Shown piece after piece: positions 14,812 through 50,556 of a stretch of 50,556 bases of DNA. Location of the stretch: the NCBI RefSeq assembly GCF_001194135.2, contig NC_068987.1, positions 61,513,871 to 61,564,426 on the forward strand. Reading direction: 5' to 3'. The notes under the pieces are model-generated. The model did no database searches, had not been told where the DNA came from, and worked only from the letters and a program-made list of their open reading frames with translations. Position numbers and translations under genes: made by a program. The stretch's first letter is position 1. The number at the start of each line of letters is the position of its first letter. Source of the stretch: Octopus bimaculoides (lineage: Eukaryota).

Positions 14812-14855
<44 letters not shown>

Positions 14856-15945: not shown

Positions 15946-16122
<177 letters not shown>

Positions 16123-16779: not shown

Positions 16780-16823
<44 letters not shown>

Positions 16824-17396: not shown

Positions 17397-17482
17397 TTGA
17401 GGGAAATGACGTCGCTTCAAGGTTGCTCTGATGTTCCGATCAAGTTTTTGAAAACACTGTTCGGCAGTATGTGCTGGATGGG
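17397..17482 (-). CDS. R3HDM4: R3HDM4 coding exon 5 (HPAHTAEQCFQKLDRNIRATLKRRHFPQ), 86 nt, phase 1 to 0
   Basis: Acceptor ttctttttcatttag, donor CAA|GTAAGC; matches R3HDM4 [27 protein letters not shown]. Confidence 0.95.
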
Positions 17483-22413: not shown

Positions 22414-22446
<33 letters not shown>

Positions 22447-23180
22447 ATAAGGGAGTAAGCTGGCAGAATCGTTAGCACGCTGGATGAAATGCTTAGCGGC
22501 ATTTCGCCCATCACTACGTTCTGAGTTCAAATTCCGCCAAGGTCGAGAAAATAAGTACCAGTTACGCACTGGGGTTGATGTAATCGATTATCCCTCCACC
22601 CCAAATTTCAGGCCTTGTGCCTATAATAGAAAGGATTATTATTATCATTAATTAGTTACATCATGATTCGACACAGTAAGATCTGACCTTCCTAAGCAAC
22701 TGATACCAGCAAGTTTAAATAAAAATTCAACAGATAAAACTCATAATCAGTCTCAGAAATGTAGTAAAGGTTAAAATATTTTTCAAAATAGAAACAAAAG
22801 GAGATTTCGAAAGGTAAAAAAAAAACAAAAAAAAACTAACTAAACAAAATAAAACAGTAACCAAGGAAACAACGCTAGATTATTTTCCTAATTTTAACTT
22901 GTGAAATTTTTACCGGAGTAAACAAATGTAAGACTTCAATTAAAAAAATATTTTTGATATTACATTCAATTTAGGGCATCAAGCTGGCTGAATCATTAGC
23001 ATGCCAGGCAAAATGCTTAGCAATATTTCATCCACCTTTATGATCTGATTTCATACCCTGCAGAGGTTGACTCTGCTTTGCATCGTTTTAGAGTCAGTAA
23101 AATAAGTACCAGTCGAACACTGGGGGGGGGGTCTTATCCCACCCCGGAATTGCTGGCCTTGTGCCAAAATTTGAAGTCAA
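21878..23180 (+). mobile_element. Cluster of four co-oriented family A SINEs (about 21878, 22216, 22452, 22976)
   Basis: Repeated family A consensus; (att)n lies between the middle two. Confidence 0.8.
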
Positions 23181-23204
23181 TATTACATTCAATTTAAAAT
23201 CTTT

Positions 23205-23420
23205 TTGATACTAACCCACCTGAGAATGTTCCTGGTTTGATGATAAGCTTCCTGTTTTTAAAAAGGATTTAATTACAAGTCTCCCATAAAAAAAAATCAG
23301 GTTATGTTCCAAACACAAGCAGACTAAAAACAAAATTATTTTCGTAATTCTTCATTAATTTCAAAATTGATTGAAACAAAGTCAACATATTTCAAATGAA
23401 ATCTGGTAACAAAAGGATTA
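23205..23420. mobile_element. Second CCCTTT/AAAGGG-type MITE family (another copy at about 28212-28395)
   Basis: Degenerate inverted ends ctttttgatac / ggtaacaaaagg; the two copies are homologous. Confidence 0.55.
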
Positions 23421-23477
23421 AACTGCTTTGTAAAATCTCTAAAATCATTAATACAGTATTCTGTTGTGTTTGGAGAG

Positions 23478-23617
23478 AGTCATTCTCTTTTAGTGCCTTT
23501 TAATTTAACACAAAAGGTTGCAAGATGCAACAAAAATTTTAGAAAAATAAAGAAGGAAATGAGTGGAAATTTTACCGGTGAGTGTGTTAAATTATCAGGC
23601 ACTAAAAGAGAATGACT
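23478..23617. repeat. 35-bp inverted repeat with 70-bp spacer
   Basis: 23478-23512 versus the inverse of 23583-23617: 2 mismatches. Confidence 0.92.
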
Positions 23618-24132
23618 TTCCCCAGACACAACAGAAAATGCTTCAATACACGAATTCAGATAAAGAATCTTGCAAATCAAATCCAAAAACGCAATTTAAT
23701 ACAGTAATTTGTTGCTAAATTGATATGGATTAGAAAAAAATGAAAAAAATCTGGTCAAATAAGCTGTTGGCCACTCCCAGTTGTTATCCAATCCCAAAGT
23801 ATTTCGGAATTTCCTAAAGAGTTCTGAAAATTTAAATGTTTACTACAGATATGCAAGGATGAGAGAGAGAGAGTGTGAGTGTGTATACGCATGCATGTAT
23901 GTGTGTGGCTGTGAGTTAGGAAAGGGAAAGAGACGGAGATAAAGGACAATGAGACAGAGAAAACAGAGTAAGAAAAACCAAGTGAGTGAGAGTGACAGTT
24001 AAGAAGACAGAGTGAAGAAAGAAAAATAGTGTAGGAGAGAGAGAAAGAGAAGGTGAGGAAAAAATGAGAAAGTGAGGGAGAGAAAGAGAACTGCTTTCAT
24101 TGAAAGACAAAATACTGCAAGAGAACTTTTAC

Positions 24133-24251
24133 CTTCCATTTCTCTTTGTCCATTAAAATCTCAGCAAAGACTGACATCCTGGGCTCAACGCGGTCAATTT
24201 TCTCCAAGTTTCCCCAGTCATCTTTGTCAACCAGATTCAGGAGATAGCATA
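24133..24251 (-). CDS. R3HDM4: R3HDM4 coding exon 3 (CYLLNLVDKDDWGNLEKIDRVEPRMSVFAEILMDKEKWK), 119 nt, phase 1 to 0
   Basis: Acceptor ttttctttaacag, donor AAG|GTAAAA; YLLNL and SVFAE match R3HDM4 YLLTL and GIFAE. Confidence 0.93.
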
Positions 24252-24734
24252 CTGTTAAAGAAAATAGTAATGCATGCATATATATATANNNNNNNNNNNN
24301 NNNNNNNNNNNNNNNNNNNNNNNNNNNNNNNNNNNNNNNNNNNNNNNNNNNNNNNNNNNNNNNNNNNNNNNNNNNNNNNNNNNNNNNNNNNNNNNNNNNN
24401 NNNNNNNNNNNNNNNNNNNNNNNNNNNNNNNNNNNNNNNNNNNNNNNNNNNNNNNNNNNNNNNNNNNNNNNNNNNNNNNNNNNNNNNNNNNNNNNNNNNN
24501 NNNNNNNNNNNNNNNNNNNNNNNNNNNNNNNNNNNNNNNNNNNNNNNNNNNNNNNNNNNNNNNNNNNNNNNNNNNNNNNNNNNNNNNNNNNNNNNNNNNN
24601 NNNNNNNNNNNNNNNNNNNNNNNNNNNNNNNNNNNNNNNNNNNNNNNNNNNNNNNNNNNNNNNNNNNNNNNNNNNNNNNNNNNNNNNNNNNNNNNNNNNN
24701 NNNNNNNNNNNCATCATCACTGTTTAACATCTGC

Positions 24735-24786
24735 CTTGTGAGTGGATTTGGTAGACAGAAACTGAAAGAAGCCCGTTGTATATATG

Positions 24787-24817
<31 letters not shown>

Positions 24818-25028
24818 ATATGTTTGTGTGTCTGTGTTTGTCCCCCCAACATCGCTTGACAACCTATGGTGGTGTGTTTACGTCCCCGTAACTTAGTGGT
24901 TCGGCAAAAGAGACGGATAGAATAAGTACTAGGCTTCCAAAGAATAAGTCCTGGGGGCGATTTGCTCGACTAAAGGCGGTGCTCCAGCATGGCCACAGTC
25001 AAATGACTGAAACAAGTAAAAGAGTAAA
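24735..25028 (+). mobile_element. SINE family B, 5'-truncated, in intron 2
   Basis: Consensus body and tail. Confidence 0.85.
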
Positions 25029-25184
25029 GAGAGAGAGTAACATGTTTATTCTTTTCCTGGGTCATAAAAATGGTCCCAACTTGTTTCAAGCAGAAGTCTC
25101 TTAGGCTACCTCTCCAAATGGTCTTAAACATTTAACACTCTACAGTTGTTTACCACATTTTAAATATACTCATAAATTACTTAC

Positions 25185-25357
25185 AGTTTTCACATCGGCG
25201 ACTTTTATTAGCACCAAGCTTCTTATGGACATACAGGTCATCAATGGAGGTATATAAAGAACCAAGTTTTTTAGAACTGTGGTACTTGGTCAACCTGGAT
25301 GGTTTCTTTATGTTGCTGACACCTTCATCTGGGCATTCAATGACCGTGTCAAGTACG
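25185..25357 (-). CDS. R3HDM4: R3HDM4 coding exon 2 (VLDTVIECPDEG...KKLGANKSRRCEN), 173 nt, phase 2 to 1
   Basis: Poly-T tract plus aaacag acceptor; GTAAGT donor; only one frame is open; the end resembles vertebrate R3HDM4 KGRKSLQRLEN. Confidence 0.9.
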
Positions 25358-25587
25358 CTGTTTATAAAACAAAAAAAAAAAAAAAAAAAAAAAAAAGAAA
25401 AGGTGAGAGAGAGAGAGAGAAAACATTAGAATTGTATATCAAAGCAGCTGTTATTGGTGTTATATTTTATACACTTCTTTATATCTGCTAATGTTTTTGG
25501 CTTCAGAAGATCTTGGAAAGAATATACTAGAGTGGTATTGTGTATATTGTAATGAAGGGGAGGTATTGTGTATATTGTTAAGAAAAG

Positions 25588-25815
25588 CTGCGAGCTGGCA
25601 GAAATGTTAGCACGCCGGGCAAAATGCTTAGCAGTATTTCATCTGCCACTACGTTCTGAGTTCAAATTCCGCCGAGGTCGACTTTGCCTTTCATCCTTTC
25701 GGGGTCGATTAAATAAGTACCAGTTACGCACTGGAGTCAATCCAATCGACTTAATCCGTGTGTCTGTCCTTGCTTGTCCCCTCTGTGTGTAGCCCCTAGT
25801 GGGTAGTAAAGAAAT
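25588..25815 (+). mobile_element. SINE family A, young full-length copy
   Basis: CpGs retained; complete head and tail. Confidence 0.9.
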
Positions 25816-26133
25816 GTTATGAAAGGGAGGATAAAATTCTAGCTACTGTGACAGTAAGCTGCACAATATCATCATCATCATCGTTTAACATCCATTTTCC
25901 ATACTGGCATGGGTTGGATGGTTTGACAGGAGCTGATTAGCTGAAGGGCTGCTCAGGTTCCCTGTCTGTTTTGGCATGATGCCCTTCCTAACACCAGATG
26001 TTCAATTAAGAGGGCTGCTCAGGTTCCCTATCTGTTTTGGCATGATTTCTATGGCTGGATGCTCTTCCTAATGCCAGATGTTCAATTGAGAGAGGTGATC
26101 AATTAATGGACATTATCTCAGTTGAGAAACAGT

Positions 26134-26387
26134 GGAGGTGCATAGCCTAGTGGTTAGGGTGTTGGACTTATGATTGTAAGATTGTGGTTTCGATTCCTGG
26201 ACTGGGTGACACATGTTCTTGAGGAAAACACTTCATTCCATGTTGCTCCAATCCATTCAGCTGGCAAAAATGAGTAACCCTGCGACGGACTAGCATCCCA
26301 TCCAGGTGAGGAATTTATACGTCATGGAAATCAGGAAACTGGCCCTTGTGAGTCAGTATGACTCAAGAAGGAAACTTTACCTTTACC
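26134..26387 (+). mobile_element. SINE family D
   Basis: Homologous to 2006-2252. Confidence 0.85.
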
Positions 26388-29300
26388 AGTTAAGAAACAC
26401 CAGCAGCCACAGCTATGTCAGATTGTGACAACAATTGGCAAGTTCCCTAAAAAATACTGATGTTAATTAACATGTTATTGGCAAGAGAAGGAAGAGAGAG
26501 TTTGGTGTGTCAGTCTGGATACTGGGTAACATGTCACAACACTGGAAAAAAAAGGTTACAAACGTATGTGACTTTTTGGAGGATTGGTGCATGAGTATAA
26601 AAGGCAGGCAGTAAGCAGAGGTCAGGTGTTGTGAATGCAGGCAATGAAGAACTCCATTCCACAACACATCTAGCTATGCATGACTTCTTCTTCTTCTCTG
26701 GGCAAATTGACTTGCTGAGCTGGCCCATGGTTTCCCTGTTTCTAGCTGTTGGAGCCGTTTTGGTGTCAGAGGCCATGTTTTGCAACTATATTCTTTCCGA
26801 GTGTATTCTTTCTCTAGGTCTACAGAAGGATTATGAAGTCAGCGATGCAAACTAGTCAAATACTTGTTAATCATGCAGCAGTGAATTGTAATTCAATACA
26901 GCACACATCTATAAATAGGGAGACTCTATCATCTACATAAACATATCATCGTTGTTGTTTTAACATTCACATTTCTATGGATTGGATGTGATTATGTTGA
27001 GGCAGGATTTCTTCAGCCTTTTTGATGCCAAACCTCAAAAACGATTTCAAACACATGCCTGTCTACTTGTCATTTCCACCATCACCACTACTATCGTCGT
27101 CATCATCATCATCCGTTTTCCGAGTTGGCATAGATTGGCTGGTTTGACAGGATCTGGTGACCTGCAGGGTTGCATCAAGCTCCAATGTTAGCTTTGGCAT
27201 GGTTTCTATAGCTGAATGCCCTTCCAAACACATTAATAATAACATACTGAATTTTGAGACCAGTTGATGACAGCATAAGAGTTGTCACCCTTATTTGCAG
27301 GAAAGAGGAAGAAATTATGTTGCTGAAGAATATTTTTTTCTTCCTCACGGTACATTGTTGACTTGTTCATACTTCTTGCATTAAATATGTTAACATACCC
27401 AAGGTGAAGGACAGTATAGGTCAAACAAATTTATGCATCTTGCAACAGTTGGAAAGAAAATATAGAGTTTTTTTTTTTTTTAGTAGGTAAATAAAAATTT
27501 TGAGGCATATCAGTGGCACTTCAATTACTGACCTCACTGGGACCAAATTAAATTCTGTAATAACTTCATAATTAATGCACTGCTGTTCTCAAATATCTTC
27601 ACCAACCCTCCAGGGAGAAAATATTTGTGATGATTTATAAAATGCATATTAATATCTTTGGTAAGAGATTATGTGAAATGGAGAAAGAAATAGTAAAAAC
27701 AGTAGGGATAATGTGTTAGATCCTGCTTTTTCATAAATTATTTATTAGGATTTGAATGTTATAAAGATTGAGAATTATTACATGTATATATCGCCTTTAC
27801 AGTAAGACATCTGTTTCTGTCCCTTCGACACACTCTAACCTCTCATCACCTGACACAAGGCCACTTTTTCCAANNNNNNNNNNCTTCATCTTGTGCGATA
27901 CCTGGTAACCCCACTGGTGCTGATGCCATGTAAAAAGCACCAAGTCTACTCTGTAAAGTGGTTGGTGTTAGGAAGAGCATCCAGTTGTAAAAACCACGCC
28001 ATAACAGATCTCGCTGGTGCTGTTGCCACATAAAAAGCACCCAGACCACTCTGTAACATGGTTGGCATCAGGACAAGCATGCAGCTGTTTAAAAAGCTAT
28101 GCCAAAACAGACAGTGAAATCTGGTGCAGTCCTATCAAACTGTCCAACCTATGCCAGCATGGAAAACAGATGTTAAATGATGATGATGATAATGTTGGTA
28201 ATTATGATAAACCCTTTTGATACCAACTGGCCTAAGACTGTCCCTGGTTCTTGGATACAAACTTCATGCTTTTAAGTGATCTGCATCAAAATATCATGTT
28301 AAGTGAAGCTCGAAATACTAAATTCAACATTATTTTAAAAATTAATTGAAACAAAGGCAATATATTTCAACCAAAATATAGTAACAAAAGAGTTGAACTT
28401 CAAACTTCTGCATTCGAATCACAGTAATTAAAAACTGTCTTCGAGTAAGTAAACATGCCACAACGCGTAAGCAACATTAGGAGTACATAAAGTACTCATA
28501 CCCCAAGTACTTTATTTATTAATCTATTGATATGAAAGACTGAAGATATGTAGTTGCTTGGGTAGACTGAAGGTGTCCAGTTGCTTAGATACGTATCTCT
28601 CAGTTGTGTTTTATGTATGTTCATTTATCTTCTATCTTTTATGTGTTTCGGTCATTGGCTTGTGTCCATGCTGCGGTACCATCTTGAAGGGTTTAGTCCA
28701 ACATATCAAAACCAGTACTATTTTCTTTTCCTGGAACTTATTCTATCAGTCTCTTTTGCTGAACTGCTAAGTTACAGAGACATACACAAACACCAGTTGT
28801 GAAGTAGTGGTAGGAGATAAATCCACACACACACAAACATGTATATATATATATTAAGTAAAAAGAGGTAATCAGAATTTTGGATAACCCTTTACTAGCA
28901 CTGTCATCTCATTCATCAAGACTCCTCAGATATGGAGTTTTACAGAAAATTTCTGTGACTTTTGTACAAATCTGGAAAAGAACTTGTTTTTGTTTGTTAT
29001 CTGTACGTGTGTGTATATAGAAAAGAGAAAAGAAAGGAGACAAAGAAACTCATATCTGAGGAATCTCAATGAATAAGATGAAAGCACTAATAAAGAATTA
29101 TTCAAAATTTTGACTACCTATTTTTTCTTAATATATAAAATCAGTACATCACTTCAAACAAGACTGTTGGTCAACTCAAGGCTATAATAGAAGACACTTG
29201 CCCAAGGTACCATGCAATGGGATTGAACCCTAGACCATATGGTTGGAAAGCAAACTTCTTAACCACACAGCTATGCCTTCACCTATTTGTGGACACTTTC

Positions 29301-30590
29301 AACATACAGAGTTGTCATATAAGATAACCTTTCATTTGACCAGCTAAAATCATAGCCAAATCTCCCTCAAATCACTCCACATCATCATAAAAGAAAAGAA
29401 GGCATTGGATAATATGGCCCTAAACACACTATATTTACATAAGAAAAGACGAGAAGGTGACAGCAGTGTTTGATTGTAGGGCTTTCTTGAGGTTGACCAA
29501 TATTAACTCCTACTTGACTTCCCTTTCATTAGAAAACTACCACTTAACCATTTTAATACCAAACCACTCAAAACTGCCTTTAGTTTTAGACTTCCCATGT
29601 TAAGGTGATCTAAATTAAAACTTTCTATCAAAATTTCACGTTAAGTTCCAAACATCAGCTCATTAATTCTGAAGTTCTTTTTCTATATTTATCTTTTATC
29701 TTTGACATGTTTTAGTCATTAGACTATGGCCATGCTGGGGCACCAACTTGAATAATTTTTAGTCAAATGTATTGATGCCAATGCTTANNNNNNNNNNAAT
29801 TTTTAGTCAAATGTATTGATGCCAATGCTTATTTTTTTTAAAGTCTGGTACTTATTCTATCACTCTCTTTTGCCAAACTGTTAAGTTACGGGGATGTAAG
29901 TACACCAGCACCGGTTGTCAAGCAGTGGTGGTGTGTGGGATGGGACAGACACAAATACATACACACACACACACATGACAGGTTTCTTTCAGTTTCCATC
30001 TACCAAATCTACTCACAAGGCTTTGGTCAGCCTGAAGCTAGAAGACACCTACCCAAGGTGCCACACAATAGGACTGAACCCCGAACCATATGGTTGGGAA
30101 GCAAGTTTCCTACTACACAACTATGCTTGCATCTTCATAATTTTTTAAATTAATAGAAAAAGAAAAAAAAGATGATAAATAAAGAAGTGTATTTCAACAT
30201 TAAATATGGTAACAAAAAGGATAGAAGCACTCTTCTAATAGCAATGGTATATGAAACGGAAGGAAAAGTATTCCAGCTTATCTATGACTGGTTATCTATG
30301 ATTACAAATTTGTGTTAGTTGTTTTAAATAGTAACAGTAAAAGTGGTAGAAACATTAAGATCAGAAGACTTTAATTAGAACACAAATGTTTTGTCCTACT
30401 TTATGCTCAACACATCCACAGGACTTACTACAATCATTTACACCTGCTTGCTGCAGGTTGCAATGTAAACAGAACTGTCATGTGAGCACAGCTATAAATA
30501 CAGCTGTCATTGAGCCAAAAGTAGACCCTTACATGATTGTGTAAACTGCTAGAAACAACAGCCATATCTTCCTTGAATAACTCCTTAATG

Positions 30591-31106
30591 CAGGGGTTGG
30601 GGAACTTTTTTTAACCAATTACCCCAAAATGTATTTATTTACACTGACATTACCTCCCTGATTTGAAAGAAAGAAAATCATTGATTCTTTGAATTCAAAA
30701 GGTTTTTGAATCCATTTTATTGAATCTATTTATACATCCATTACATTAGACATATGCTGGGCGAAGTACTTAGCGGTATTTCATCTGCCGTTATGTTCTG
30801 AGTTCAAATTCTGCCAAGGTCGACTCTGCCTTTCATCCTTTTGGGGTCGATAAATTAAGGACCAGTTATGTACTGGGGTGATGTAATCGACTTAATCCCT
30901 TTGTCTTTCCTTGTTTGTCCCCTCTATGTTTAGCCCCTTGTGGGCAATAAAGAAATAAGATGCCGTGCTGCCAGAAGAAAAATTTCTGTCATAACAAGGA
31001 ACATGTTTTTTATTTAATTTTACTTATGTCTAATGAGTCCTAATTACTCCCAAGAATTTCATCTTCACCCCACTTGGGGTAATTTACCCTGGCTCACCAA
31101 TCCCTG
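30591..31106. mobile_element. hAT-type MITE with a nested family A SINE
   Basis: TIR caggggttgggga / tcaccaatccctg; degenerate 8-bp TSD ccttaatg / ccttcata. Confidence 0.6.
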
Positions 31107-31121
31107 CCTTCATACTTTAGG

Positions 31122-31722
31122 TTAGTGTTTCTTAACCCTTTTATACTTATGGACCCTTTAGATTCTATTTTACTCAGATGGATCCTCCAAGCCATTCAAT
31201 GTTTAAAGGAACTTATATATTTTTTTAATATTATTAGGAATTGTATAAAAAAAAAACTGTTAAGATATTTTGTGTAGTGTAGAAATAAAACCAATATTTT
31301 CTCTTTCACTTATTTTACTTGTTTCAGTCATTTAACTGTGGTCAGGCTGGAGCACCACACTGAAGGGTTTTAGTTTAGCAAATCAACCCCAGGACTTTTT
31401 TTTTTTAAGCCCAGTACTTATTCTATCCATCTTTTTCGCCAAACTGCTAAGTTATGGGGACATAAACACACTAACCATTGTTGACAAGCAGTGATGGGTG
31501 ACAAACACAGACACGATGGGTTTCTTTCAGTTTCCATCTACCAAATCCACTTGCAAAGCTTTGGTCGACCTGAGGCTATAAAAGAAGACACTTGCTCAAG
31601 GTGTCACACAGTGGGACTGAATCCAGAACCATGCAGTTGGGAAGCCTGCACCTACATAAGTTTTAACAGCAAAATCTTATATGGATCCCCAAGGGCCATA
31701 TGGACCCCAGTTGATAACTGCT
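31122..31722 (-). mobile_element. hAT/Charlie-type MITE (same family as 40975) with a nested family B SINE
   Basis: Ends are the inverse of the 40975-41236 ends; the SINE interrupts it at about 31310-31650. Confidence 0.75.
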
Positions 31723-34479
31723 GTTTTAAGTAATGAAAAGACACATTAGATAATATAGTTCAGATGGGGTGGTTATGGTTGGAATGAGGCTGATCTGCTG
31801 AAGAATCAAAAGCAGCCTGGGGTTAAGTAAAAGACCTGAATTGTAATTTATTTATTTATTGTTTGTTGTCCAATGTCCAATCAATTCTGTGGATTCACTG
31901 CGTTTATCTTTTACTTCTATCAGTCATTCAACTGTAGCCATGTTGGAGCACCTTAGTGGAACAAACTGACCTCAACTGTCAAGTGGTAGTGGTGGTGGTG
32001 GGGAGACAAACACAAAGAAACATACACATGCACTTCTTTCAGTCTCCATTTCTTAAATCCACTCACAAGGCTTTGGTTGGCCTGGGGTGATAATAGAAAA
32101 CACTCACCCAGTGTGCTACATACTGAGACTGTACTCAAAACAGTGTGGTTGGGAAGCAAACTTCTTACCACAAGGTCTTACTCATGCCTTTGTTAATAAT
32201 ATTAAAATTCAGTTTTTAAACTTTATTTACTGAAATATGATTTATTTAACAAGTTTCCTTTAATTTGTGCTTCAATGTTATTTCCACATATTTTTCTCAT
32301 ATTTCAGTCTCTGAAAACATCTCAGTGAAATTTTTAAAATAAGGAACAAAAAACACAAACCCTTGAAATGGAAATTCTCAATTAAGAGTTTGATCTTATC
32401 AGAATATTTATCAAGTCATCACGTTTTAAACAATTCCTCTTTACTATTGATTGTTATTTATAACATTTGTCTTGATTACTCATTATTCTGTTTTCCCTGT
32501 TTTCTCTAAGGACCCTTTTCTATCCTTGTTAGGGGTCAGATGAGAGTGTGGTGGGAAAGAGCCTTTCTATGATTGGATATCTTTCCTGTCACCAACCCCC
32601 ACTTGTTTGCAAGTTAAGTTATAATTTCCCAGTTTAGAAAACAACCCAAACACGAACTGGAGATAAACAGCACTGTCAGCGAAACCATTCTTTTACTCTT
32701 TTACTTGTTTCAGTCATTTGACTGTGGCCATGCTGGAGCACCACCTTAAAGAGGTTTTTTTAGCCAAAGAAACTGACCCCAGTACTTATTCTTTGTAAGC
32801 CTAGTACTTATTCTATTAGATTCTTTTGCCAAACTGCTAAGTTACAGGGACATAAACACACCAGCATCAGTTGTCAAGCGATGGTGGAAGTGGAGGGGGG
32901 ACAAACATACGCATACAAATATATACATACATACACACACACATATACGACAAGCTGCTTTCAATTTCCATCTATCAAATCCACTCACAAGGCTTTGGTC
33001 AGCCTGAGGCTATAGTGGAAGACACTTGCCCAAGGTGCCACACATGTTTTTGGGAAACAAGCTTCATACCACACACCCACAAAACACCACTAGACAAGGA
33101 AAGTACAAACACACACACACAACAGGTTTCTTTTAGTTTCCCTCAACTGTATCCACTCGCAAGGCTTTGATTAGCTGGGAGCTATAATAGAAGGTGCAAC
33201 GCAGTGGGATTGAACCCAAAACCACATGGTTGGAAAATGAACTTCTTAGCCAAACAACCATTGCATGTTAATTCTTAATTAGCTAACATGACCCTGTCTA
33301 AAGATAAATATATTCATTTGAACATACAATACCTGTTGTGAAAATTATACAAGTAAAATAGAATGTTCGATTTGTTTTCATAGTTCTATGCTTGACAGGA
33401 TATGGTGATAACCTTATTTCTTGAGCTGCCTGAGCAAAGAAATGAAAATTCACTGACAAAGTTGTTACAAAACTACAGGAGAAGCAAAGACAACAAACGC
33501 CACTGATTTTTGTATTTTGAAAGACAACATATACCTTTAGTCTTTGTAATTTGGAACTTTTTAAGTTGATAACATGATAACATGCAAAGTAAATGGTTAT
33601 GAAATCTCTGTAAGAGATGAAAGTAGTAACTGTACTGGCAAGTAATGTTAGTAGCCACTTCAACATGGCTATTAAGTATGAATGGACATTACTGCAATTT
33701 TTTAACTCCAAGAGAACATTTCCTCTAGCTGGTTAACGATGCAATCTGCATCCGATATATTGCAAGTAGGGGAGTCAACCCCTGCCACATTCTAGCAAAT
33801 TGACAGCTAAATCTCCTCTAAATCACACCCAGTTAGCTATGTTAGCATCTGATGGAAACTATGATAGGACTAAACAACAATAGCTCTTCAAATTAAGGTT
33901 TGAACATGAAAAATAAATTCATTAGCAAACCCATTTGTGAAAATATTTCTCTCAAAACACACTGTCTTTCTTTCAATTTATTTCGAAAAATAGTTTGTTT
34001 ATTCTATTACTTGTTACAGTCATTTGACAATGGCCATGCTATGACATCACCTTGAAGGGTTTTAGTCAAAGGAATCAACCCCAGGACTAAATTTTTTTTT
34101 CTAAGCTTCATACTTATTCTATCAGTCTCTTTTGCCGAACCACTAAGTTATTGGGACATAAACATACCAACACTGGTAGTTAAGTGATGGTTGGAGGACA
34201 AACATAGATACAAAGGCAGACACATAAATATATACATACATATATATATATATGTGTGCGTGTGTGTGTGATGGGCTTCTTTCAGTTTCTGTCTACCAAA
34301 TCCACTCGCAATGCTTTGGTCATCTCAAGGCTATAGTAGAAGACACTTGTCCAAGGTGTCACGCAGTGGGACTGAATCCAAAACCATATGATTGGGAAGC
34401 AAGATTCTTACCACACAGGCATACTTGTCATTATTACTGGTGTTTGGAACATGAATTAAGATGAAAGGTTTTAATCTAA

Positions 34480-34697
34480 CCCTTTAACATTCAAACCCAT
34501 CATATCCGGCCAAAATATTTTAAGTTATATGTTGAAACTGGCCAGATCTGGCCTCTCAACTCATCCCTGCAATGTCATTGTAAAACTAAGCAGTCACGTC
34601 ATCAACATCTCTAAGCTACAAGATAATGCATGATTAATCTAAAACAATATGGATAAACAAACATAACATTTGGCAGGATAATCTGAATACTAAAGGG
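34480..34697 (+). mobile_element. piggyBac-type MITE
   Basis: (T)TAA|CCCTTT...AAAGGG|TTAA termini; related copies at about 21215-21427, 36269-36489 and 39437-39613. Confidence 0.8.
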
Positions 34698-35309
34698 TTA
34701 AATCACTTCAAAAGAATGAAAAAAAAAACAAAATAAAATTTGTTTTTAATCAAGTCTTTGAAGCCAAACATTTCCACCATGTCTTGGAAGCAAGTCATAG
34801 AAACTGCAGCTGTTGAGTATTGATTCTTATTAACACTTTTTCCTCTATCCACATACAGGGTAATTTTTCAGGAAAAATTTAGCTGCTATTTCTAGCAGAT
34901 AAAGAGAATGCAAGGAAAGGCTTTTGCTTTTGTTTGTACATGATGTGGATTTCATGTTGCCGTATTTTTCTATGTACTGCTGCTGCTGCTGCCGCCGCCA
35001 CCGCCTCCACCACCACCACTATTATCATCAATTTAACGTCCATGTTTCCAAGCTTACATGTGTTGACTGGGTGTGTCTGCAATATATCACATTGTTATGC
35101 AATTTGATCTTTTTCCTTCCCACCATAGAGAACAAACACCCAGGTTTCATCAAACAACATTATTTCTTTACCATTAATATGTCTAATAACTTTCCTGACT
35201 GAGAATGTAATATACTTGGCCACTACCTTACTAAAATTAGTAGCCAAGCCACCCAGAAATCACAACCAACGGTCATAATAAAAAAAGGGGGCGGATACAT
35301 TGGTTAATA

Positions 35310-35643
35310 TCATCATCATCGTTTAACGTCCGCTTTCCATGCTAGCATGGGTTGGACGATTTGACTGAGGACTGGTGAAACCAGATGGCTACACCAGGCT
35401 CCAATCTGATTTGGCAGAGTTTCTACAGCTGGATGCCCTTCCTAACGCCAACCACTCAGAGAGTGTAGTGGATGCTTTTACATGTCTCCCGCACGAAGGC
35501 CAGTCAGGCGGTACTGGCAACAGCCATGCTCAAAATGGTGTATTTTATGTGCCACCCGCACAAGAGCCAATCCAGGGGCACTGGCAAAGATCTCTACGAA
35601 GGCCAGTCAGGCGGTACTGGCAATGGCCATGCTCTTATGACCC
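35310..35643 (-). mobile_element. Repeat family C, young copy running into a gap
   Basis: Near-exact inverse of 18627-19106. Other copies at about 7440-7630, 14940-15410, 17550-17830, 25868-26085, 26945-27235, 27890-28190 and 38610-38910. Confidence 0.88.
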
Positions 35644-36268
35644 NNNNNNNNNNNNNNNNNNNNNNNNNNNNNNNNNNNNNNNNNNNACATAAAAAGAAAA
35701 AAAAATGAGATGGACAATGTTAGAATGCCTTCAATCAGTCCTACTTAACTAGGGTTGACCTGTGGCTAAACAACTTCTGCCTTACATAATTAGTTTTATG
35801 CCTAGTTGCAAAGAAATACATTTAAAAATTTACTTTTTTTTCTTTTTAATGGGGAAAACAAATTCCTGACTCAGACACTATTTTACAAGTACAAAAGTGG
35901 GGAAATGATATCACGTGATGTGTATGCTTTTCTGAAAGCATTCGAAAGCATTAGCAATAAAACGGGTTTATCAAGGAAATTATAAAATGAAAATGAATTA
36001 CTAACATGAAAAAAAAACAAAAAAAACAATGTTTTTACATTGAAATATTTCAATAATCAAAACATGTCTGAAAAGTATTCAGGTAATTCAAAACGCAACT
36101 AATTTAAAATAAACTGAATCACTACTACTTCTGCAAAGAAGAGACTGCCACTTTGTAGGTACTCATCCTGGAAGAAATAGCAGCCATATCACCCTTGAAT
36201 CATACTCAACTGTCTTTAAAATAGATTCAAGACACACGGGATAATGTAGTCATAGATACATAGTTTAA

Positions 36269-36489
36269 CTCTTTGGCATTATTTAACTTGGCCATATCTA
36301 GCCTATATTTTATTAGCCTTATGTTCAAATCAACCAGATCCGCCTTCTCACATCTACCCTACAGTATCAGTCTAAAAATAAACAATCACATCATTGAAAT
36401 CTCAAAGCTGTGAGATAATACATGATTAATTCAAAACAATGTGAATAAACAAGCATTATATTTAACAGGGAAGTCTAAATGCTAAACAG
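36269..36489 (+). mobile_element. piggyBac-type MITE, diverged copy
   Basis: TTAA flanks; homologous to 34480-34697. Confidence 0.7.
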
Positions 36490-37009
36490 TTAAATAAAAG
36501 ATAAGGTGATGGTGGCTGGAATATCTTTCATCATAAGTTTGCTCAATCATTGTTGTAACACGGCTCAATAATATCAACTGATCTTTTATCTTTTGTTTGT
36601 TTCAGTCATTGGACTGTGGCTATGCTGGAGCATTGACCTGAAATGTTTTAGTCAAACAAATTGACCTCAGTACTTATTTAGTACTAGCACTTATTCTATC
36701 AGTCTTTTAAAACCAAACTCCTAAGTTACAGAGAAGTAAACAAACCAACACCAGTAGTCAAGCAGTGGTGGGGGGCAAACACAAAAACATACACAAATGT
36801 ATATATTTTTATATATTTATACACACACACACACACAGCAGGCTTCTTTCAGTTTCCATCTGCCACATCCACTCAGAAGGCTTTGGTTAGTCTGGGGCTA
36901 TAATAGAAGACACTTGTCCAAAGTATCATGCAGTGGGACTGAACCTAGAACTATGTGGTTGGCAAGCAAACTCCTTATGATACAACCATGCCTGCACCTA
37001 TTGATACTG

Positions 37010-39710: not shown

Positions 39711-40780
39711 TGTAGTGAAACCAACTCTCGGTTATTTATTTACAAACGCGAACGTAGCAGGTAACATCTATCTCTTTCCCGCCTTTGGACCCTGTTGTGT
39801 CATCACCTGACTGACTCTTATTTGCACGGCAATTGTCTCCAGTCCTGTTCGCGCCAGGGTGCAAACCGACCAATCGTGGCCATCTAATAAGGTCACGTGA
39901 GAGAGTGTTTTTCTGATCTTTCTGGAGCCTCTATTTACCTATAAATAGCCTGCTTTAACCCGCGCCACTTTGTCGCGGCTTCAGATCTCTCACAGGTCTG
40001 GTCACTGACCACACACGTCTTCGAATTCAGATCTCTCACAGGTCTGGTCGTTGACCACACACATACAGAACACAGCTACAGCCAGTTCCAGCGCCGACGT
40101 CTTCACCACCAATGCACTGTCTACCATTGTCGTCACCAGCAACACCAACATCAAAAAGAGCGGTTTTATCTTGACGCTGTTGAGTGGATTGTTTCCACCC
40201 ACGAATAACAGTCAGAACTAACCAGCCAGAATATACTATACCAGGTAACACAGGTCCCAGCATTCAACGCTCAACACCCATAGTGTGATACTACAGTTCT
40301 GCTCCCTGACCACAACTTCCTGCGTATGAACATTCTATCTCCTTGTGTAACTTTAATACGAACTGGTTTTTCTCTATAGACACTCTTTCTATGTTCTGTG
40401 TTACTTTCTCTCACACACACACTTGTACACACACATATTGTACACACACTATTGCTTATATGACTGTCCGTCACTTCACATTGTTGTATACCTTCTCTTG
40501 TATCAAAAGGCCTGATTTATCTACTGTGTTAATTGTATATGTCGCATGCACGCACACACAGACAGTTTCACTTTGTTAATAAATTTATTCTCATTATATA
40601 TTTAACAGTTGAGTTGTCCTAAGTTCTTATTACTGGCACTATGGCTCGTATTCTCTTACGAGGAGCCTTCTTCTATTATATATATCTTTATTTTTGTGTT
40701 CGACCGTGCGATATGGTAAAAAGGAGCCTTTTCCCGTCTACGTTGCCATCTCCTTTGGTTCACATGGTCGAAGTATTACA
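39711..40780 (+). mobile_element. Solo-LTR-like element (1070 bp) in R3HDM4 intron 1, antisense to the gene
   Basis: TGTAGT...ATTACA termini; 4-bp TSD caca (weak, because the context is CA-rich); TATAAATA at 39940; AATAAA at 40578; CpG-rich; internal 46-bp duplication at 39980-40062. Confidence 0.72.
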
Positions 40781-41236: not shown

Positions 41237-41465
41237 TCCTGGACCAAATCCAGAGAAAGGTCACCTAATTGGGATGAAATCACTCACAAAAACATTTCTA
41301 ACTCTAGCGCTGTCACCTCTTTGTCTTTTCTACTGCTACTACAGTGGTCTATGCTCTCCTACAGCCAGCTGATTTTGTGTCACTTCCACTTAGTTACACA
41401 CAACTCACTCTCCTCTTCCCATCACCTATGTATTATGAATCATATTGTGTTCATCACCACACAGT

Positions 41466-41845
41466 GGGGGCGCAATGGCCCAGTGGTTAGGGCAGTGGAC
41501 TCGCGGTCATAGGATCGCTGTTTCGATTCCCAGACCGGGCGTTGTGAGTGTTTATTGAGCGAAAACTCCTAAAAGCTCCACGAAGCTCCAGCAGGGGATG
41601 GTGGCGAACCCTGATGTACTCTTTCACTACAACTTTCTCTCACTCTTACTTCCTGTTTCTGTTGTGCCTATAATTCAAAGGGTCAGCCTTGTCACACTGT
41701 GTCACGCTGAATATCCCCGAGAACTACGTTAAGGGTACACGTGTCTGTGGAGCGCTCAGCCACTTGCACGTTAATTTCACGAGCAGGCTGTTCTGTTGAT
41801 CGGATCAACTGGAACCCTCGACGTCGTAAGCGACGGAGTGCCAAC
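41466..41845 (+). mobile_element. tRNA-derived SINE family E, young copy
   Basis: Head tggcccagtggttagg...gtttcgattccc; partial TSD tcatcacca. The 3' part is the inverse of an older copy at about 15622-15945. Confidence 0.85.
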
Positions 41846-44976: not shown

Positions 44977-45457
44977 CTTATTTTATCGACCCCAAAAGGA
45001 TGAAAAGCAAAGTCAACCTCGGTGCAATTTCAATTCAGAGCGTAAGGCTGAAAGAAGTGTCACGACGCATTTTATTCCCTGTGCTAATGATTCTGCCAGC
45101 TCGGTTGTTGCTCGTTAGAGGGAGAATGTGCTATTTGTATCACATCACAGAAGCAAAGCAACGATTTGCATGATGCAATAACGTATTTTTTNNNNNNNNN
45201 NNNNNNNNNNNNNNNNNNNNNNNNNNNNNNNNNNNNNNNNNNNNNNNNNNNNNNNNNNNNNNNNNNNNNNNNNNNNNNNNNNNNNNNNNNNNNNNNNNNN
45301 NNNNNNNNGATTTTTGCCAATTTTTTTTGCAGATTCGTATTCCTCGTAGCCGAGAACCGGGGCTTGTGTCGAAAACAAAGGAAATAATTATAAAGAAAGG
45401 GTGTTTTGGTGGTGTGGGTGGACGGGCAGAAGTCTTGCCATACACAGGAAAAGGTTG

Positions 45458-45611: not shown

Positions 45612-48444
45612 TGAATTATATAGACAGGCATCTCAAAAGTAAATAGACATTATTTTTTGAAAACTTTTATTTCTAGAAGCAATGCGTTTAAATACTTAAT
45701 CTATTATTTAGTAGACCTGTTTTGTGTATAATACATTAACAAACTTTGAAACACCAGGTAATGTCCGCAAATATAAAGCAGCATAATGAGTGGTGTCTCT
45801 ACTTTTGAGATATTTCTGTATACGTATGTATGTTGTGCCTTATACATACATACATACACACATATATATAATATATATACATACATACACACACCTTTTC
45901 CTCGACTTACGACCACAAAAAAAAATAACTAATTAAAAAATCGATTTTTGGACGTTGAGTTTTGTCTACTGTCCCTACTCGTCTATCCAGAGAGGTACAT
46001 TTTCTTTTTCTCTCCTTGTTGTTTGTATATTGGAACGATAAAATAAAGAGCATTTTCAACTATCATTTTCTTCTGTCATTTATTGCATAGACTTCAAAAA
46101 CAATCGACTGAACCATTATGTTCTTTGTGACCTGACATCTACCATACATCTTTGACGACAACAACGTTTAAAAAACCAAACATGCACTCTTTTCAAGTTG
46201 CCAACCATCAACATATAAACTGTTGCATTTCTGGTGAAGACGACGTGCAAACAGCAGCACGTATTTAATTACACACACACACAACTAGTGAAAATGTTGC
46301 AAGTCACAATGAAAATTTTAGTAAAAAAAATAACAAGTAAATGAGTGGAAAACAGACCGGTGAATGTGTTAAATTAATAAGACACTAAAAGAGAATGACT
46401 CAACACACGAATTCACATAAAGAATCTTGCAAACCACATACAAAAACGAAGTGCAGTGTTTCTTTTCTGGTTTTGTAAGTGTTGTGAATGAGAAAGGAAA
46501 CAGAGATGCTGGGTGCTCTGAACTAGGTAAATTTACTCTATGTGCAACGTGACCGAAACGAAGTCGTACAGGTGATTAAGCGATGGTACAGAAAACACGT
46601 TCTCTTTTTTGTGTGTGTGTGTTTGTGTGAAAATGCCACGAGAAAGTAGCAACGATATTAGGTCTGTTCAAGTTAAGCTGGGAAGCGAGTTCCAATGCAG
46701 TCGACAGGTAATGTAATGTATTGTGAACTCTCGCGAGGTGCAGCACCGAACGTGGGTAGTGTTGGGAATTAGAGCTAACTTGACACAGACCGAAAAAAAT
46801 CGCAGGCTGCATATGTGTAATAGGATGTATGCACGTTGTTTACGCCAAAAAGAGAAAAGTGCAGCAAAATTTAAGTAACCTGAGGAAACTGCAAACATTT
46901 ATAGGAAAGTGGGTTATACATCATTAGATGTACACCTGACTTTCCTATATTAAATTAGAAATTAACGGCAACGCTGAACTCCAGACTATCAACACAAACA
47001 ATATTTATTCATGGTGGAAAATATACATCTTTAATCTTGTTTGTTGAGACGTCTTCGGTGTGTGAGAACATGGTTGTTGGGACGTTGGTATATTGATGTG
47101 AGCTGTATAGCGTGAGTTCGAAAGATGGAGAGACAACTAGANNNNNNNNNNNNNNNNNNNNNNNNNNNNNNNNNNNNNNNNNNNNNNNNNNNNNNNNNNN
47201 NNNNNNNNNNNNNNNNNNNNNNNNNNNNNNNNNNNNNNNNNNNNNNNNNNNNNNNNNNNNNNNNNNNNNNNNNNNNNNNNNNNNNNNNNNNNNNNNNNNN
47301 NNNNNNNNNNNNNNNNNNNNNNNNNNNNNNNNNNNNNNNNNNNNNNNNNNNNNNNNNNNNNNNNNNNNNNNNNNNNNNNNNNNNNNNNNNNNNNNNNNNN
47401 NNNNNNNNNNNNNNNNNNNNNNNNNNNNNNNNNNNNNNNNNNNNNNNNNNNNNNNNNNNNNNNNNNNNNNNNNNNNNNNNNNNNNNNNAAACATGCAATA
47501 TGGTGTGTCCCTGGTGGTGGGGTTGTTGGCGCACGACATTGTGGTAGACAGTACATTGATGGAGAAGACGTCGGCGCAGGAACTGTAATATAGCTGTAGC
47601 TGTGTTCTGTATGTGTGGTGGTAATGATGTTGACGGTGGTAATGATGTCCTGTTGAAACAGTTGGCGACGTCGGGGGAATGCTTGTAGTTGGTAGTGGTT
47701 GTTGTTGTCGTCGCGGTGGTAATCTTGGTTGAACGAAGCTGGTGGCGAAAAGGCTGCTTGGTGATGATGGTGTTTGAAGAGGTACGCTTTTACAGACGGT
47801 CGACAGAAAAACTCTGTACGACCATTAGCGTTGACCTTGATGAGATTTTCTTAACCCAAGATGAAAGAACGACCGTGCGAACTCAAAAAGGAGAAATGGT
47901 GACGAATGGAAAAACAGAGGACTCCTTTTATTTAAACGTGTCACACGGTCGAACACAAAATAATATATCAAAGATGATATACAAATAATTATGTTATACT
48001 ACGATAACATAAATAGCCNNNNNNNNNNNNNNNNNNNNNNNNNNNNNNNNNNNNNNNNNNNNNNNNNNNNNNNNNNNNNNNNNNNNNNNNNNNNNNNNNN
48101 NNNNNNNNNNNNNNNNNNNNNNNNNNNNNNNNNNNNNNNNNNNNNNNNNNNNNNNNNNNNNNNNNNNNNNNNNNNNNNNNNNNNNNNNNNNNNNNNNNNN
48201 NNNNNNNNNNNNNNNNNNNNNNNNNNNNNNNNNNNNNNNNNGTCAGTACACGTGAGAGTTTTATACCAAGTTCTTGAGTACACAATTGGAAGTATCGCAG
48301 GCTGTAATTCTTGTCTGTTTATTATCGTGGTGAAGCTAAGTCACCTAACAGAATCGAAGAGAGAGATTTGTCGCGGTGGTTTAGTTCGGTGTACATAGTA
48401 AGTCGTGTTGACTATGGTTGGAGATGTCGGTGGTCATCGTTGCT

Positions 48445-48620
48445 TGGTAGTTCAGTCTCCATGGCCGCATTTGTTCTTTAGTCGGGGTCACCAGTTATAG
48501 GTTGGTAGTCCAGAATCCATGGCCGCGTTTGTTTCTTAGTCGGGGTCACCACTTTATAGGTTGGTAGTCCAGAATCCATGGCCGCGTTTTATCTTAGTCA
48601 GGGTCACCACTTTATAGGAA
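48445..48620. repeat. 58-bp tandem repeat x3, each unit carrying a 13-nt PBS and the LTR end
   Basis: gtcggggtcacca at 48481, 48539 and 48597 (the last is gtcagggtcacca), each followed after 2 nt by ttatagg. Confidence 0.92.
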
Positions 48621-48666
48621 AGTTGGTTATCAGTTATATAGAAATAGTTGTTATTGTAGCTCAGCG

Positions 48667-48698
48667 GGCTGCGTGTTTGAATCACGTCGGGGTCACCA
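48667..48698 (-). promoter_or_regulatory. Primer-binding site complementary to the tRNA-Trp 3' end (32 nt including CCA)
   Basis: Plus strand ggctgcgtgtttgaatcacgtcggggtcacca equals the eukaryotic tRNA-Trp 3' half plus CCA with 1 mismatch, 2 nt from the LTR end. Confidence 0.88.
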
Positions 48699-50556
48699 CT
48701 TTATAGGAAAGTGGGTTATACATCATTAGATGTACACCTGACTTTCCTATATTAAATTAGAAATTAACGGCAACGCTGAACTCCAGACTATCAACACAAA
48801 CAATATTTATTCATGGTGGAAATATACATCTTTAATCTTGTTTGTTGAGATGTCTTCGGTGCGTGAGAACATGGTTGTTGGGACGTTGGTATATTGATGT
48901 GAGCTGTCTAGCGTGAGTTCGAAAGATGGAGAGACAACTAGACACGTCCTTGCTCAATCGCTGGCCAGCAAGAAAGAGATCGATCAAAGCGGGAAAGCTT
49001 GGTTGTTGAATTCCACGCATGCGTGAGACTACGCATGTGCACGGCGTTACTACACATTCATACAAAAGCATGAAGTGAAAACTATTGCAAGAGAACAGCA
49101 TGTGGTGTTAATGCATGATGGATAGTCTGTAAACGGCTGGAGAGAAGGGAACATCATGAAAGATGCGTGCACGTGGAATAGTCGTCTGCAAGTGGGTCTG
49201 CAGAGGAGGAATGCAGTATTAGCTTTGAGCATAACTGTGTTGTTGTAAGGTTATAAGCGTGCTAACATGAGAACGAATGAAGTTTGCCGGGAGGAATTTT
49301 TTTTTTTAACAGAACGAAATGAAATATAACATATTGGATTAATGATTCTTGGAGGAAACAAAATAGGAACATGCAAAGAAAGAATTCTTGAGTGCCTATA
49401 AAGTGAGTGTCCGGGTGGAATTTGACGAAAAATGTTGGTTCCGAAGTTCTGGACGCGAGATGAAAATAACGTGTGCGCAGTCACATTTCTGTTCATTGTA
49501 ACCTTCCATAGTCTCTACTATGTGATCATATGTGCGAACAGTTGTTAGGATGCATTTCATTGATGTGTGAAGCGTGTTGGAAACAGAGCTCTCATCGGCT
49601 GCAAGCCGGGCCGCGAAGTTCAACAGCCGGATTTTCATGTCAATTGTCATTTCTGGTGGTCTTGTTACCATTTTGTGGTTCATAGTTGAACATTGTCATA
49701 CATACATACATACATATATTTCCAGAAGTTTATCCATTATACATAAGCATGTCGAGATATGCAACTATATATGCATGAGAATGCATACATAAAACACACA
49801 AATCTGCACATACATACACACATACAGACAGACAAACAGATACACAAACAAACAAAAATACCCTGTTGTTGATGTTGAAATTCCAGTGAAGGAGCCTTGG
49901 ATCTACGTTAGAAACTGGTTCTTTCTCTATTGGCAAGAAATATTGAAATAAACTGAATAATGACATACACATACATACATGCATGGATGCGTACATACAT
50001 ACATACATACAAATGTATATACGTACATACATGCATATATACTTACGTACGTACGTACGAGCATTCATCCTTATTTAAATGCATGCATATACATACATGA
50101 ATATGTTGTTGGTATTTCAATGGGGGAACTAGAAATCGGCTCTTTCCATTGGTGAAGAATTCCCAAAATAAAACTAAGCGAACGTACATATCTTTGCAAC
50201 ATTGTGATGAAAATGTGTATCTGTGTGCCAAATTATGGATTGTGTTGGCATCTTTAGGATGCAATTTCTGTGTGTAACAGCAGCATTTTTCCTGACGTGG
50301 GCCTTACTTGCGCTTTATAGAGGGTCTGCAGTATCTTCTGACCTTTTACAAGTGTTTGGGATGTGTTGAATGTGAGAATTCCGGGGTTTTTATGGGACCT
50401 AGAATCTGTGTCTGATGAATTTAATTGTGTGTCCTTGTACTGTTAGGAGAAACAAAACTGGGTAATCTTCAAGTTTAGGGGGATAAAAAAATAAATAAAA
50501 ATATTCAAGGGAAATAACTGAACGACTTACCAGGGATCTTGTTCAAAACGGGGGCA

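Follow-up and report, generated by a model that had tools for sequence, protein, structure and literature searches.

The window, by which we mean the whole stretch of 50,556 nt from Octopus bimaculoides that was analysed, carries at 48667-48698 a 32-nt copy of the 3' part of tRNA-Trp, and we are highly confident that this copy is the primer-binding site (PBS) belonging to an LTR element on the minus strand. In position, in orientation and in its first 18 nt the site is an ordinary tRNA-Trp PBS, and it is unusual in its length. We lean, with moderate confidence, to the view that the extra length is a copy of the primer that arose by read-through past A58 during plus-strand strong-stop synthesis, the product then being fixed. 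Taken alone the window is a well-explained curiosity, a molecular fossil rather than a new system.

The tRNA-Trp match

On the plus strand 48667-48698 reads GGCTGCGTGTTTGAATCACGTCGGGGTCACCA, which is the sense 3' part of a eukaryotic tRNA-Trp(CCA), positions 45-76, including the added CCA. The plus strand is thus the tRNA-sense strand, and the PBS and the element are therefore on the minus strand. For reference we used tRNA-Trp genes in eukaryotic metagenome contigs, as a proxy for the host's own tRNA-Trp. They were found by a metagenome scan with tRNA positions 49-73, leaving 56-57 free, which gave at least 120 loci, and at nearly every locus listed the match was called tRNA-Trp(CCA) by ARAGORN. 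The genes read ...AGATCAGAAGG[C/T]TGCGTGTTC[A/G]AATCACGTCGGGGTCA, or in a longer form ...CTCCAGATCAGAAGG[C/T]TGCGTGTTC[A/G]AATCACGTCGGGGTCA. The isodecoder with GGCT at 45-48 and CG at 56-57 makes up 28 of the 108 tRNA-Trp genes that have an intact anticodon loop among the matches listed, and with CCA added it agrees with the window at 31 of 32 positions. The two differ only at position 56 (window 48678), where the window has T in place of C, a CpG to TpG change; all 108 of these listed genes have C there.

The three parts of the tRNA-like block are as follows, with A58 at 48680 and CCA at 48696-48698.

48681-48698, minus strand: canonical 18-nt PBS, complement of tRNA-Trp 59-76 including CCA; 18/18 identity to the tRNA-Trp 3' end
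48667-48680, minus strand: PBS extension beyond A58 (tRNA-Trp 45-58: T loop, 5' strand of the T stem, variable loop); 13/14 identical
48658-48666, minus strand: decayed tRNA complement, positions 36-44; 6/9 identical, chance p about 0.02

The sequence-only reading had described a 32-nt match with one mismatch that takes in CCA, the 3' strand of the acceptor stem, the whole T arm and part of the variable loop, and the 31/32 identity to the isodecoder bears this out. Its extent is another matter: the near-perfect 32 nt stand, but the length was understated, as likeness to tRNA-Trp goes on to 48658 (position 36), giving 41 nt with 4 mismatches by BLAST and local alignment, and BLAST gives 89.5% for 48658-48695 against tRNA-Trp genes. 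That reading had also named two outcomes that would count against it. One was a match ending at 18 nt or fewer, and against the proxy tRNA-Trp genes it runs to 32 nt; the other was an extension confined to this copy and derived from a tRNA pseudogene, and the extension recurs in other contigs while the ARAGORN and Rfam searches came back empty. The minus-strand placing, the length of about 41 nt, the position of the site as first of four copies, the CpG decay at the mismatch and the two N gaps had escaped it.

Mismatches in the tRNA-like block follow a gradient, the proximal 32 nt having 1 and the distal 18 nt having 8 (Fisher p = 6e-4). ARAGORN found 0 tRNA genes on the window, and Rfam gave 0 matches in the window at gathering thresholds and 0 at E <= 10 on 48350-48760. 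A tRNA gene, pseudogene or SINE was considered and rejected, given that both searches were empty, that CCA, which eukaryotic tRNA genes do not encode, is present and that only positions from about 36 to 76 are represented. The identity to tRNA-Trp includes CCA, and the block therefore derives from the mature tRNA and not from a gene.

The element around the site

The PBS abuts one member of a 98%-identical pair of direct repeats (48699 to about 49403, and 46898-47142) that behave as LTRs. Over 244 nt the two copies differ by 3 substitutions and 1 indel, a divergence of about 1.6%. Position 48700 is the first of the shared repeat and 48698 the last of the PBS, and in the orientation of the element the junction of LTR and PBS (marked by a slash) is ...CCTATAAAG/TGGTGACCCCGACGTGAT, also written ...CCTATAAAG/TGGTGACC... 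The features of the element, from its 5' end, are these.

48699-49403, minus strand: 5' LTR, about 705 nt, direct repeat with 46898-47142; the inner (U5) end is certain
48806-48811, minus strand: candidate poly(A) signal AATAAA in R/U5 (TTTATT on the plus strand), from a motif search
48702-48751, minus strand: U5 hairpin with 23-nt arms, 83% complementary, stopping 3 nt upstream of the PBS, from an inverted-repeat pair
48242-48443, minus strand: leader-side non-coding interior downstream of the PBS array
48020-48241, no strand: second N run (assembly gap) within the element
47489-48019, minus strand: internal sequence between the gaps, without gag/pol similarity
47143-47488, no strand: N run (assembly gap) covering the rest of the 3' LTR, the polypurine-tract site and some interior
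46898-47142, minus strand: second LTR copy (candidate 3' LTR), outer U5 end ...CCTATAAA, cut by the N gap after 245 nt

The outer end of the 5' LTR would lie at about 49403, judging from a terminal inverted repeat CTTTATAGG...CCTATAAAG. An 11-nt inverted match between 48697-48707 and 49395-49405 (counterpart CCTATAAAG(TG)) was seen in 13/20000 shuffles. The U5 hairpin has an MFE of -32.7 kcal/mol and a z of -4.5, and 0/200 shuffles fold as well. AATAAA was found on the minus strand of the LTR and not on its plus strand, which supports the minus-strand orientation of the element.

No TSD was found on comparing the flank at 46893-46897 (AAACA) with the flank after 49402-49405 (GTGAG or AGTGT), several LTR boundaries being tried. 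As there is no TSD and two N gaps lie between the LTR copies, it is uncertain that both belong to a single insertion.

The interior, so far as assembled (47489-48019 and 48242-48698), has no coding sequence, and its true length spans the two N gaps. The assembled element sequence has no uninterrupted ORF of 120 aa or more, and tblastn with 120 gag-PR relatives and the pol ORFs of three elements described below (L033, L094 and L039) found no gag or pol in the assembled sequence of the window. The window element is probably non-autonomous. Further copies of its family were not found by an exact look-up with the longest ORF of the LTR, by a homologue search or by a scan of IMG/VR for the U5/PBS junction. 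The internal sequence at 47512-47622 resembles 40054-40153 on the opposite strand.

Internal copies of U5 end and tRNA complement

The window has four copies of a module that joins the end of U5 to a tRNA complement, of which the PBS is the first and the other three are internal and degenerate. Its 13-nt core, GTCGGGGTCACCA, occurs at 48481, 48539, 48597 (with 1 mismatch) and 48686, four copies against 0.32 expected.

48610-48639, minus strand: internal fragment like the last 30 nt or so of U5, preceding PBS-like copy 2; 48611-48630 is 95% identical to 46898-46917
48444-48618, minus strand: tandem array of three 58-nt units (TRF: period 58, 3.0 copies, 90% matches)

Each 58-nt unit is made up of the last 9 nt or so of U5 (CCTATAAAG) and a degenerate tRNA-Trp complement, of which the first 13 nt are intact in two of the three units and have 1 mismatch in the third. 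In element order the LTR is followed by copy 1 (32-41 nt), 16 nt, the U5-like piece of about 30 nt and copy 2, and then by 9 nt of U5 end with copy 3 and 8 nt of U5 end with copy 4. Copies 2-4 have departures from the tRNA in common and were therefore duplicated from one unit that had already diverged. They are colinear with the tRNA complement up to the anticodon loop (GATTCTGGA vs GATCTGGA), their T-arm part is not conserved, and the upstream part of the units, taken alone, gives p = 0.01-0.04 against the tRNA complement. The units also show CTACC as in the D loop, a likeness too brief to be tested.

Extended sites at other loci

Perfect tRNA-Trp complements of 29-50 nt are present at nine metagenome loci and on two contaminant contigs. 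The nine metagenome loci were picked from the 120 or more by the 25-nt pattern (49-73), and they thus show recurrence and not frequency. They have no tRNA gene, and show the tRNA 3' part followed by CCA. The perfect runs are listed here.

L019: 31 nt
L023: 50 nt, reaching position 27
L033: 32 nt
L039: 39 nt, then one mismatch at G37 and match to position 28
L058: 35 nt
L094: 32 nt
L103: 37 nt
L116: 29 nt
L119: 29 nt
L158: 39 nt, on a contaminant-like contig from the 18-nt-seeded GTDB scan
L176: 33 nt, on a contaminant-like contig from the 18-nt-seeded GTDB scan

Three of these loci carry retrotransposon proteins downstream of the site, in the predicted orientation: L033 has protease, RT, RNase H and integrase and L094 has RT and RNase H, both with pol split over more than one reading frame, and L039 has a gag with two CCHC knuckles and a protease.

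There are multiple copies at some of these loci also. In L033 the stretch from the LTR end to the leader contains four PBS-like copies. The first is an 18-mer that differs by two transitions, the second is partial and reaches about position 40, the third is the perfect 32-mer, and the last is a 14-mer preceded by about 10 nt that resemble the U5 end. This 14-mer and the leader are orthologous to the single 14-nt PBS and leader of a relative, L133. In L094 and L116 a second PBS copy comes after the extended one, lacking its first 8-10 nt and joined at CC.

Kinship of L103 with the window element had been proposed on a BLAST match (81% over 68 nt) and was dropped, as the likeness in U5 is non-significant once the tRNA part is removed. 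A TAAAG/TGG junction is common to the window element, L103 and L131.

Sites of canonical length

A scan of IMG/VR seeded with the 18-nt tRNA-Trp PBS only gave nine contigs, all retrovirus-like, which we take to be of the avian retrovirus group that uses tRNA-Trp. In 9/9 of them complementarity is lost exactly at A58, giving 18 nt, and the 28-nt extended pattern was found in 0 IMG/VR contigs. The sequence-only reading had stated that a stop at m1A58 limits the PBS to 18 nt or fewer; these contigs agree with it, as does the literature, in which strong-stop synthesis normally stops at m1A58 to leave an 18-nt PBS (PMC8599865, PMC13191261, PMC6380271).

Relatives of L033 were chosen by their gag-PR protein, including matches in termite and beetle genomes, and were taken with their flanks. 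Their PBS runs are 13 (with one mismatch), 11, 14, 14 and 18 nt. Long pairing is therefore sporadic and is not required for priming. For L133 and L143 an LTR end was verified, and it is 0-3 nt away from the PBS.

The 18-mer scan of GTDB gave chiefly chance matches in GC-rich bacteria, and also bacterial tRNA-Arg(CCT) genes, with the last 27 nt including CCA in common. Six contigs that look like eukaryotic contaminants have runs of 18 (L144), 18 (L174), 20, 19, 33 (L176) and 39 nt (L158), and L174 has DUF7041 and RT downstream of its tRNA-Trp PBS. Only a minority of sites extend beyond about 22 nt, none of them in the retrovirus-like set, and such extension is not a clade-wide property.

End points and tRNA modification

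For the pooled loci an end point at or before A58 was classed as canonical. Of the longer copies, those in the window, L033, L094, L019 and L176 end at 44-46, and that in L103 ends at 40. L158 ends at 38, one base 3' of G37; the perfect run of L039 ends there too, its one mismatch falling on G37. L023 and L039 end at 27-28, one base 3' of G26. No copy among the pooled loci reaches the tRNA's 5' end.

These end points resemble, as far as sequence can tell, the stop profile of an RT on a modified tRNA. Both m1G37 and m2,2G26 are methylations of the Watson-Crick face at which RTs stop or misincorporate, and in human tRNAs 25/25 detected m2,2G26 sites were in the high-modification group (PMC5066629). 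A native tRNA gives discrete RT products and an unmodified transcript is copied to its 5' end, and the lack of any copy to the tRNA 5' end is thus what is expected of a partly modified tRNA and not of an unmodified one (PMC13191261).

A second kind of mark is seen at A58. In L174, L143 and one L033 copy the element strand has a C opposite A58, which is a mismatch, and the match is then renewed for 6 nt (L174), 3 nt (L143) and more than 13 nt (the L033 copy). The mismatch looks like a scar of misincorporation. In the window A58 was copied faithfully and there is no such scar.

Position 54 of vertebrate tRNA-Trp is a pseudouridine and not a methylated U (PMC6380271). If tRNA-Trp has no second stop of the tRNA-Lys3 type, an RT that got past A58 would be expected to run freely through the T arm. 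The commonest end point, at about 45, is not beside any known blocking modification, and may reflect a pause at the foot of the anticodon stem, together with CC microhomology.

Origin of the extra length

In the origin that we favour the reverse transcriptase would pass A58, either on a primer that lacks m1A58 or by bypassing m1A58, and synthesis would carry on across the T arm and enter the variable loop or the anticodon arm. The over-long product would then enter a progeny copy, probably by re-alignment at a C-rich microhomology or by repair of the unpaired tail. Once established the extension could sustain itself, as strong-stop products that end anywhere from A58 to about 45 would still be fully complementary to the minus strand; such longer products could complete the second strand transfer, and each cycle might 'refresh' the block from the tRNA.

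The arrays may be read in the same way. A unit consisting of the last nt of U5 and a tRNA complement is what the 3' end of plus-strand strong-stop DNA would be, and we therefore read the arrays as over-long strong-stop DNAs that re-aligned. Their sequences look like the products of strand switching: over-long strong-stop DNAs would re-align at short C-rich homologies and later be amplified by unequal exchange. In the window the three 58-nt units and the U5-like piece of about 30 nt would be older products of like events, or would come from unequal exchange between modules.

The LTRs differ by about 1.6% and there can have been few substitutions since insertion. The decay of the distal part therefore predates this copy, and the proximal 32 nt were kept or renewed. 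Either re-copying of these 32 nt from the primer in each cycle or purifying selection on them fits. Re-copying matches the logic of the lentiviral case, where complementarity to position 55 keeps longer products usable (PMC8599865).

The sequence-only reading had put forward read-through, a hypomodified primer and a selected pairing without ranking them. Read-through or a hypomodified primer can now be set first, on the strength of end points at RT blocks, the scars, the arrays and the short-PBS relatives. The third, in which a 32-nt duplex with the whole T arm and variable loop is selected as it improves primer capture or initiation, we consider improbable. Selection would account for the contrast between a near-perfect proximal 32 nt and a distal 18 nt that is half decayed, in an element with LTRs only about 1.6% apart, and also for the ending of three to five independent elements at 44-46, where the anticodon stem begins, with no stem having to be melted. 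On the other hand 11-18 nt suffice in the protein-selected relatives of L033 and in the retrovirus-like contigs, the T-arm part is not conserved in the internal degenerate copies, and a need for pairing does not easily explain extensions of 39-50 nt that end by G37 or G26, or have a mismatch at G37. There are extra contacts of primer and template in other systems (PMC13191261, PMC6380271), but those known are non-contiguous boxes and not a continuous copy.

We give still less credence to priming by a 3' half or other long 3' fragment of tRNA-Trp, the length of the extension then being that of the fragment. One element of Drosophila is known to take a tRNA fragment as its primer, and ends at position 38 (L158, L039 and L058) fall where tRNA halves begin; the weak likeness in the window ends at about position 36. 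With a fragment A58 must still be unmethylated or be bypassed, however, and ends at 27-28 and 44-46 are unlike the usual ends of fragments, while a stop at m1G37 explains the ends at position 38 equally well (PMC5066629).

An origin at the DNA level or an artefact is very improbable; the block would then be a pseudogene, a SINE head, a retro-copied fragment of a tRNA or a misassembly, and would lie beside the repeat by chance. In its favour are the assembly gaps between which the region lies, the lack of a TSD to join the LTR copies and the lack of gag or pol in the assembled sequence of the window. Against it, the block has CCA, lacks the tRNA 5' half (the promoter half that a SINE would have), is negative with ARAGORN and Rfam, and is placed at the LTR end exactly as a PBS would be, in both register and orientation. 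The junction recurs four times in the window, and at least 11 contigs that are unrelated have a like arrangement, several of them with pol downstream.

Implications

At these loci the 18-nt limit of the PBS, usually taken as fixed by m1A58 of the primer, has been crossed again and again in nature, with products that are inherited. A wider proposal, which we put forward tentatively and think rather doubtful as yet, is that read-through of A58 is a recurrent and heritable process in invertebrate retrotransposons primed by tRNA-Trp, one that writes into them a footprint of tRNA modification, with stops beside G37 and G26 and scars at A58 and G37, and that builds arrays of U5 end and PBS by re-alignment at microhomologies. 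If so, an extended PBS would free the element from m1A58 for the second strand transfer, and the distribution of PBS lengths in a genome would be a fossil read-out, for each host, of tRNA-Trp modification in the germ line.

If it holds at the scale of families, read-through would offer a way to judge, from sequence only, the strictness with which tRNA-Trp is modified at A58, G37 and G26 in the places where the elements replicate. It would also account for a class of tandem repeats in the leaders of retrotransposons, and would bear on annotation software in which PBS matches longer than 18-30 nt are capped or passed over.

Comparison with known systems

In the literature searched, which covers older retrovirology thinly, we found no account of an extended PBS or tRNA read-through pattern, of clustered end points or of U5-PBS arrays. 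That older work does include tRNA sequences at the LTR-LTR junctions of circular viral DNA, to go by one paper as it is cited within PMC6380271. An LTRdigest survey gives PBS alignments of 11-28 bp (median 15) in Drosophila and 11-18 bp in mouse (PMC2790888). It too has matches above 18 bp in LTR elements of invertebrates, but gives the range of lengths only, with no analysis of end points and no arrays.

The canonical part of the site may be compared with the 18-nt tRNA-Trp PBS of the nine retrovirus-like IMG/VR contigs. The first 18 nt (TGGTGACCCCGACGTGAT) are identical, and the window site resembles theirs also in lying directly 3' of U5 with structured U5 just upstream. Those of the IMG/VR contigs stop at A58 (9/9), whereas that of the window runs 14-23 nt further and has the module repeated internally.

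In the CsRn1 clade of Ty3/gypsy elements a tRNA-Trp PBS goes with a CHCC gag motif CX2HX9CX3C and a 4-bp TSD (PMC2582038). The tRNA-Trp PBS is common to the window element, and the CX2HX9CX3C signature is present in the gag of L033, which has relatives in termite and beetle. The window element differs in having, in its assembled sequence, no gag or pol by which to classify it and no TSD, and the sampled members of the clade have a PBS of 11-18 nt.

Contacts of the primer outside its 3' 18 nt are known as non-contiguous pairings, including the avian U5-TpsiC interaction, the primer activation signal and the boxes of Ty1 and Ty3 (PMC13191261, PMC6380271, PMC5371799). There as in the window other parts of the tRNA can pair with element RNA, in the window by sequence. 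The known contacts are separate short boxes, often upstream in U5, while the window has one uninterrupted colinear copy downstream of the PBS.

A parallel for the extension itself is seen in lentiviruses, which have complementarity to tRNA-Lys3 up to position 55 and a second RT stop at m5Um54 (PMC8599865). In both cases contiguous complementarity past A58 would keep longer strong-stop products usable for the second transfer. The lentiviral extension is of only 4 extra nt (the 22-nt case) and ends before a second blocking modification, whereas the copy in the window spans the whole T arm, and its match, instead of ending one nt before position 54, passes through 54-45.

Assignment of short PBSs to tRNA-Trp

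Among the GTDB-genome contigs matched by the 18-nt PBS scan, L151, L152 and L163 are bacterial tRNA-Arg(CCT) genes in alphaproteobacteria-like genomes, and L148, L153, L159 and L171 are probably genes of the same kind. The final 27 nt of these genes, including the encoded CCA, are also those of eukaryotic tRNA-Trp, and whether a short PBS belongs to tRNA-Trp thus has to be judged from positions 45-49 and from context. Eukaryote-type LTR/PBS junctions are present on other contigs that GTDB lists under bacterial or archaeal genomes (L144, L158, L161, L172, L174 and L176), with DUF7041 and RT also found on L174, from an Alcanivorax assembly. These contigs are likely to be contamination from a host or other eukaryote.

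The metagenome locus L023 has a 50-nt tRNA copy, and downstream of it is a 571-aa ORF (1627-3339, minus strand) that has a NADAR domain (E = 6e-20) instead of gag or pol. The ORF may be host sequence, either captured or neighbouring.

PBS copies and the position opposite A58

In the metagenome locus L033 there are four PBS-like copies between the leader and the LTR end (about 5270-5400 in element orientation), of which the one adjoining the LTR is the most decayed, while the perfect 32-mer is an internal one. Its relative L133, selected by gag-PR protein, has only one PBS, of 14 nt, at the orthologous site. In L033 copy 2, in L174 and in L143, another L033 relative, the element strand has a C precisely opposite tRNA A58, after which complementarity resumes, and it is possible that this C is a scar of misincorporation at m1A58.

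The Octopus element also has an array, downstream of its PBS:

48444-48618, tandem array of three 58-nt units

Each unit comprises the final 8-9 nt of U5 followed by a degenerate tRNA-Trp complement, from which about 10 nt near tRNA position 26 seem to be absent, as though skipped.

Other repeats and gaps in the window

A 111-nt segment within the element (47512-47622) has 81% identity to the opposite strand of 40054-40153, at a distance of 7 kb, and may represent a separate repeat family or a captured fragment. Several further dispersed repeat families occupy 1300-6800, 13000-17700 and 22000-37000. The remaining features are:

2004-2083, 26132-26211 and 41465-41544, tRNA-like (SINE-like) repeat in three copies, none of which ARAGORN called
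14040-14277, tandem repeat of 24-nt period, about 10 imperfect copies
about 24290-24720, about 45300-45420, 47143-47488 and 48020-48241, assembly gaps (N runs), the last two inside the element

LTR ends and U5 hairpin

The LTR termini of the window element differ from the usual TG...CA. The sequence CCTATAAAGTG at 49395-49405, the probable marker of the LTR's outer end, is an exact inverted match to the LTR/PBS junction, including a TG that at the opposite LTR end is part of the PBS. The inner end carries a further feature:

48702-48751, strong U5 hairpin with 23-nt arms, stopping 3 nt short of the PBS

The location of this hairpin is reminiscent of the U5 stems that adjoin the PBSs of retroviruses.
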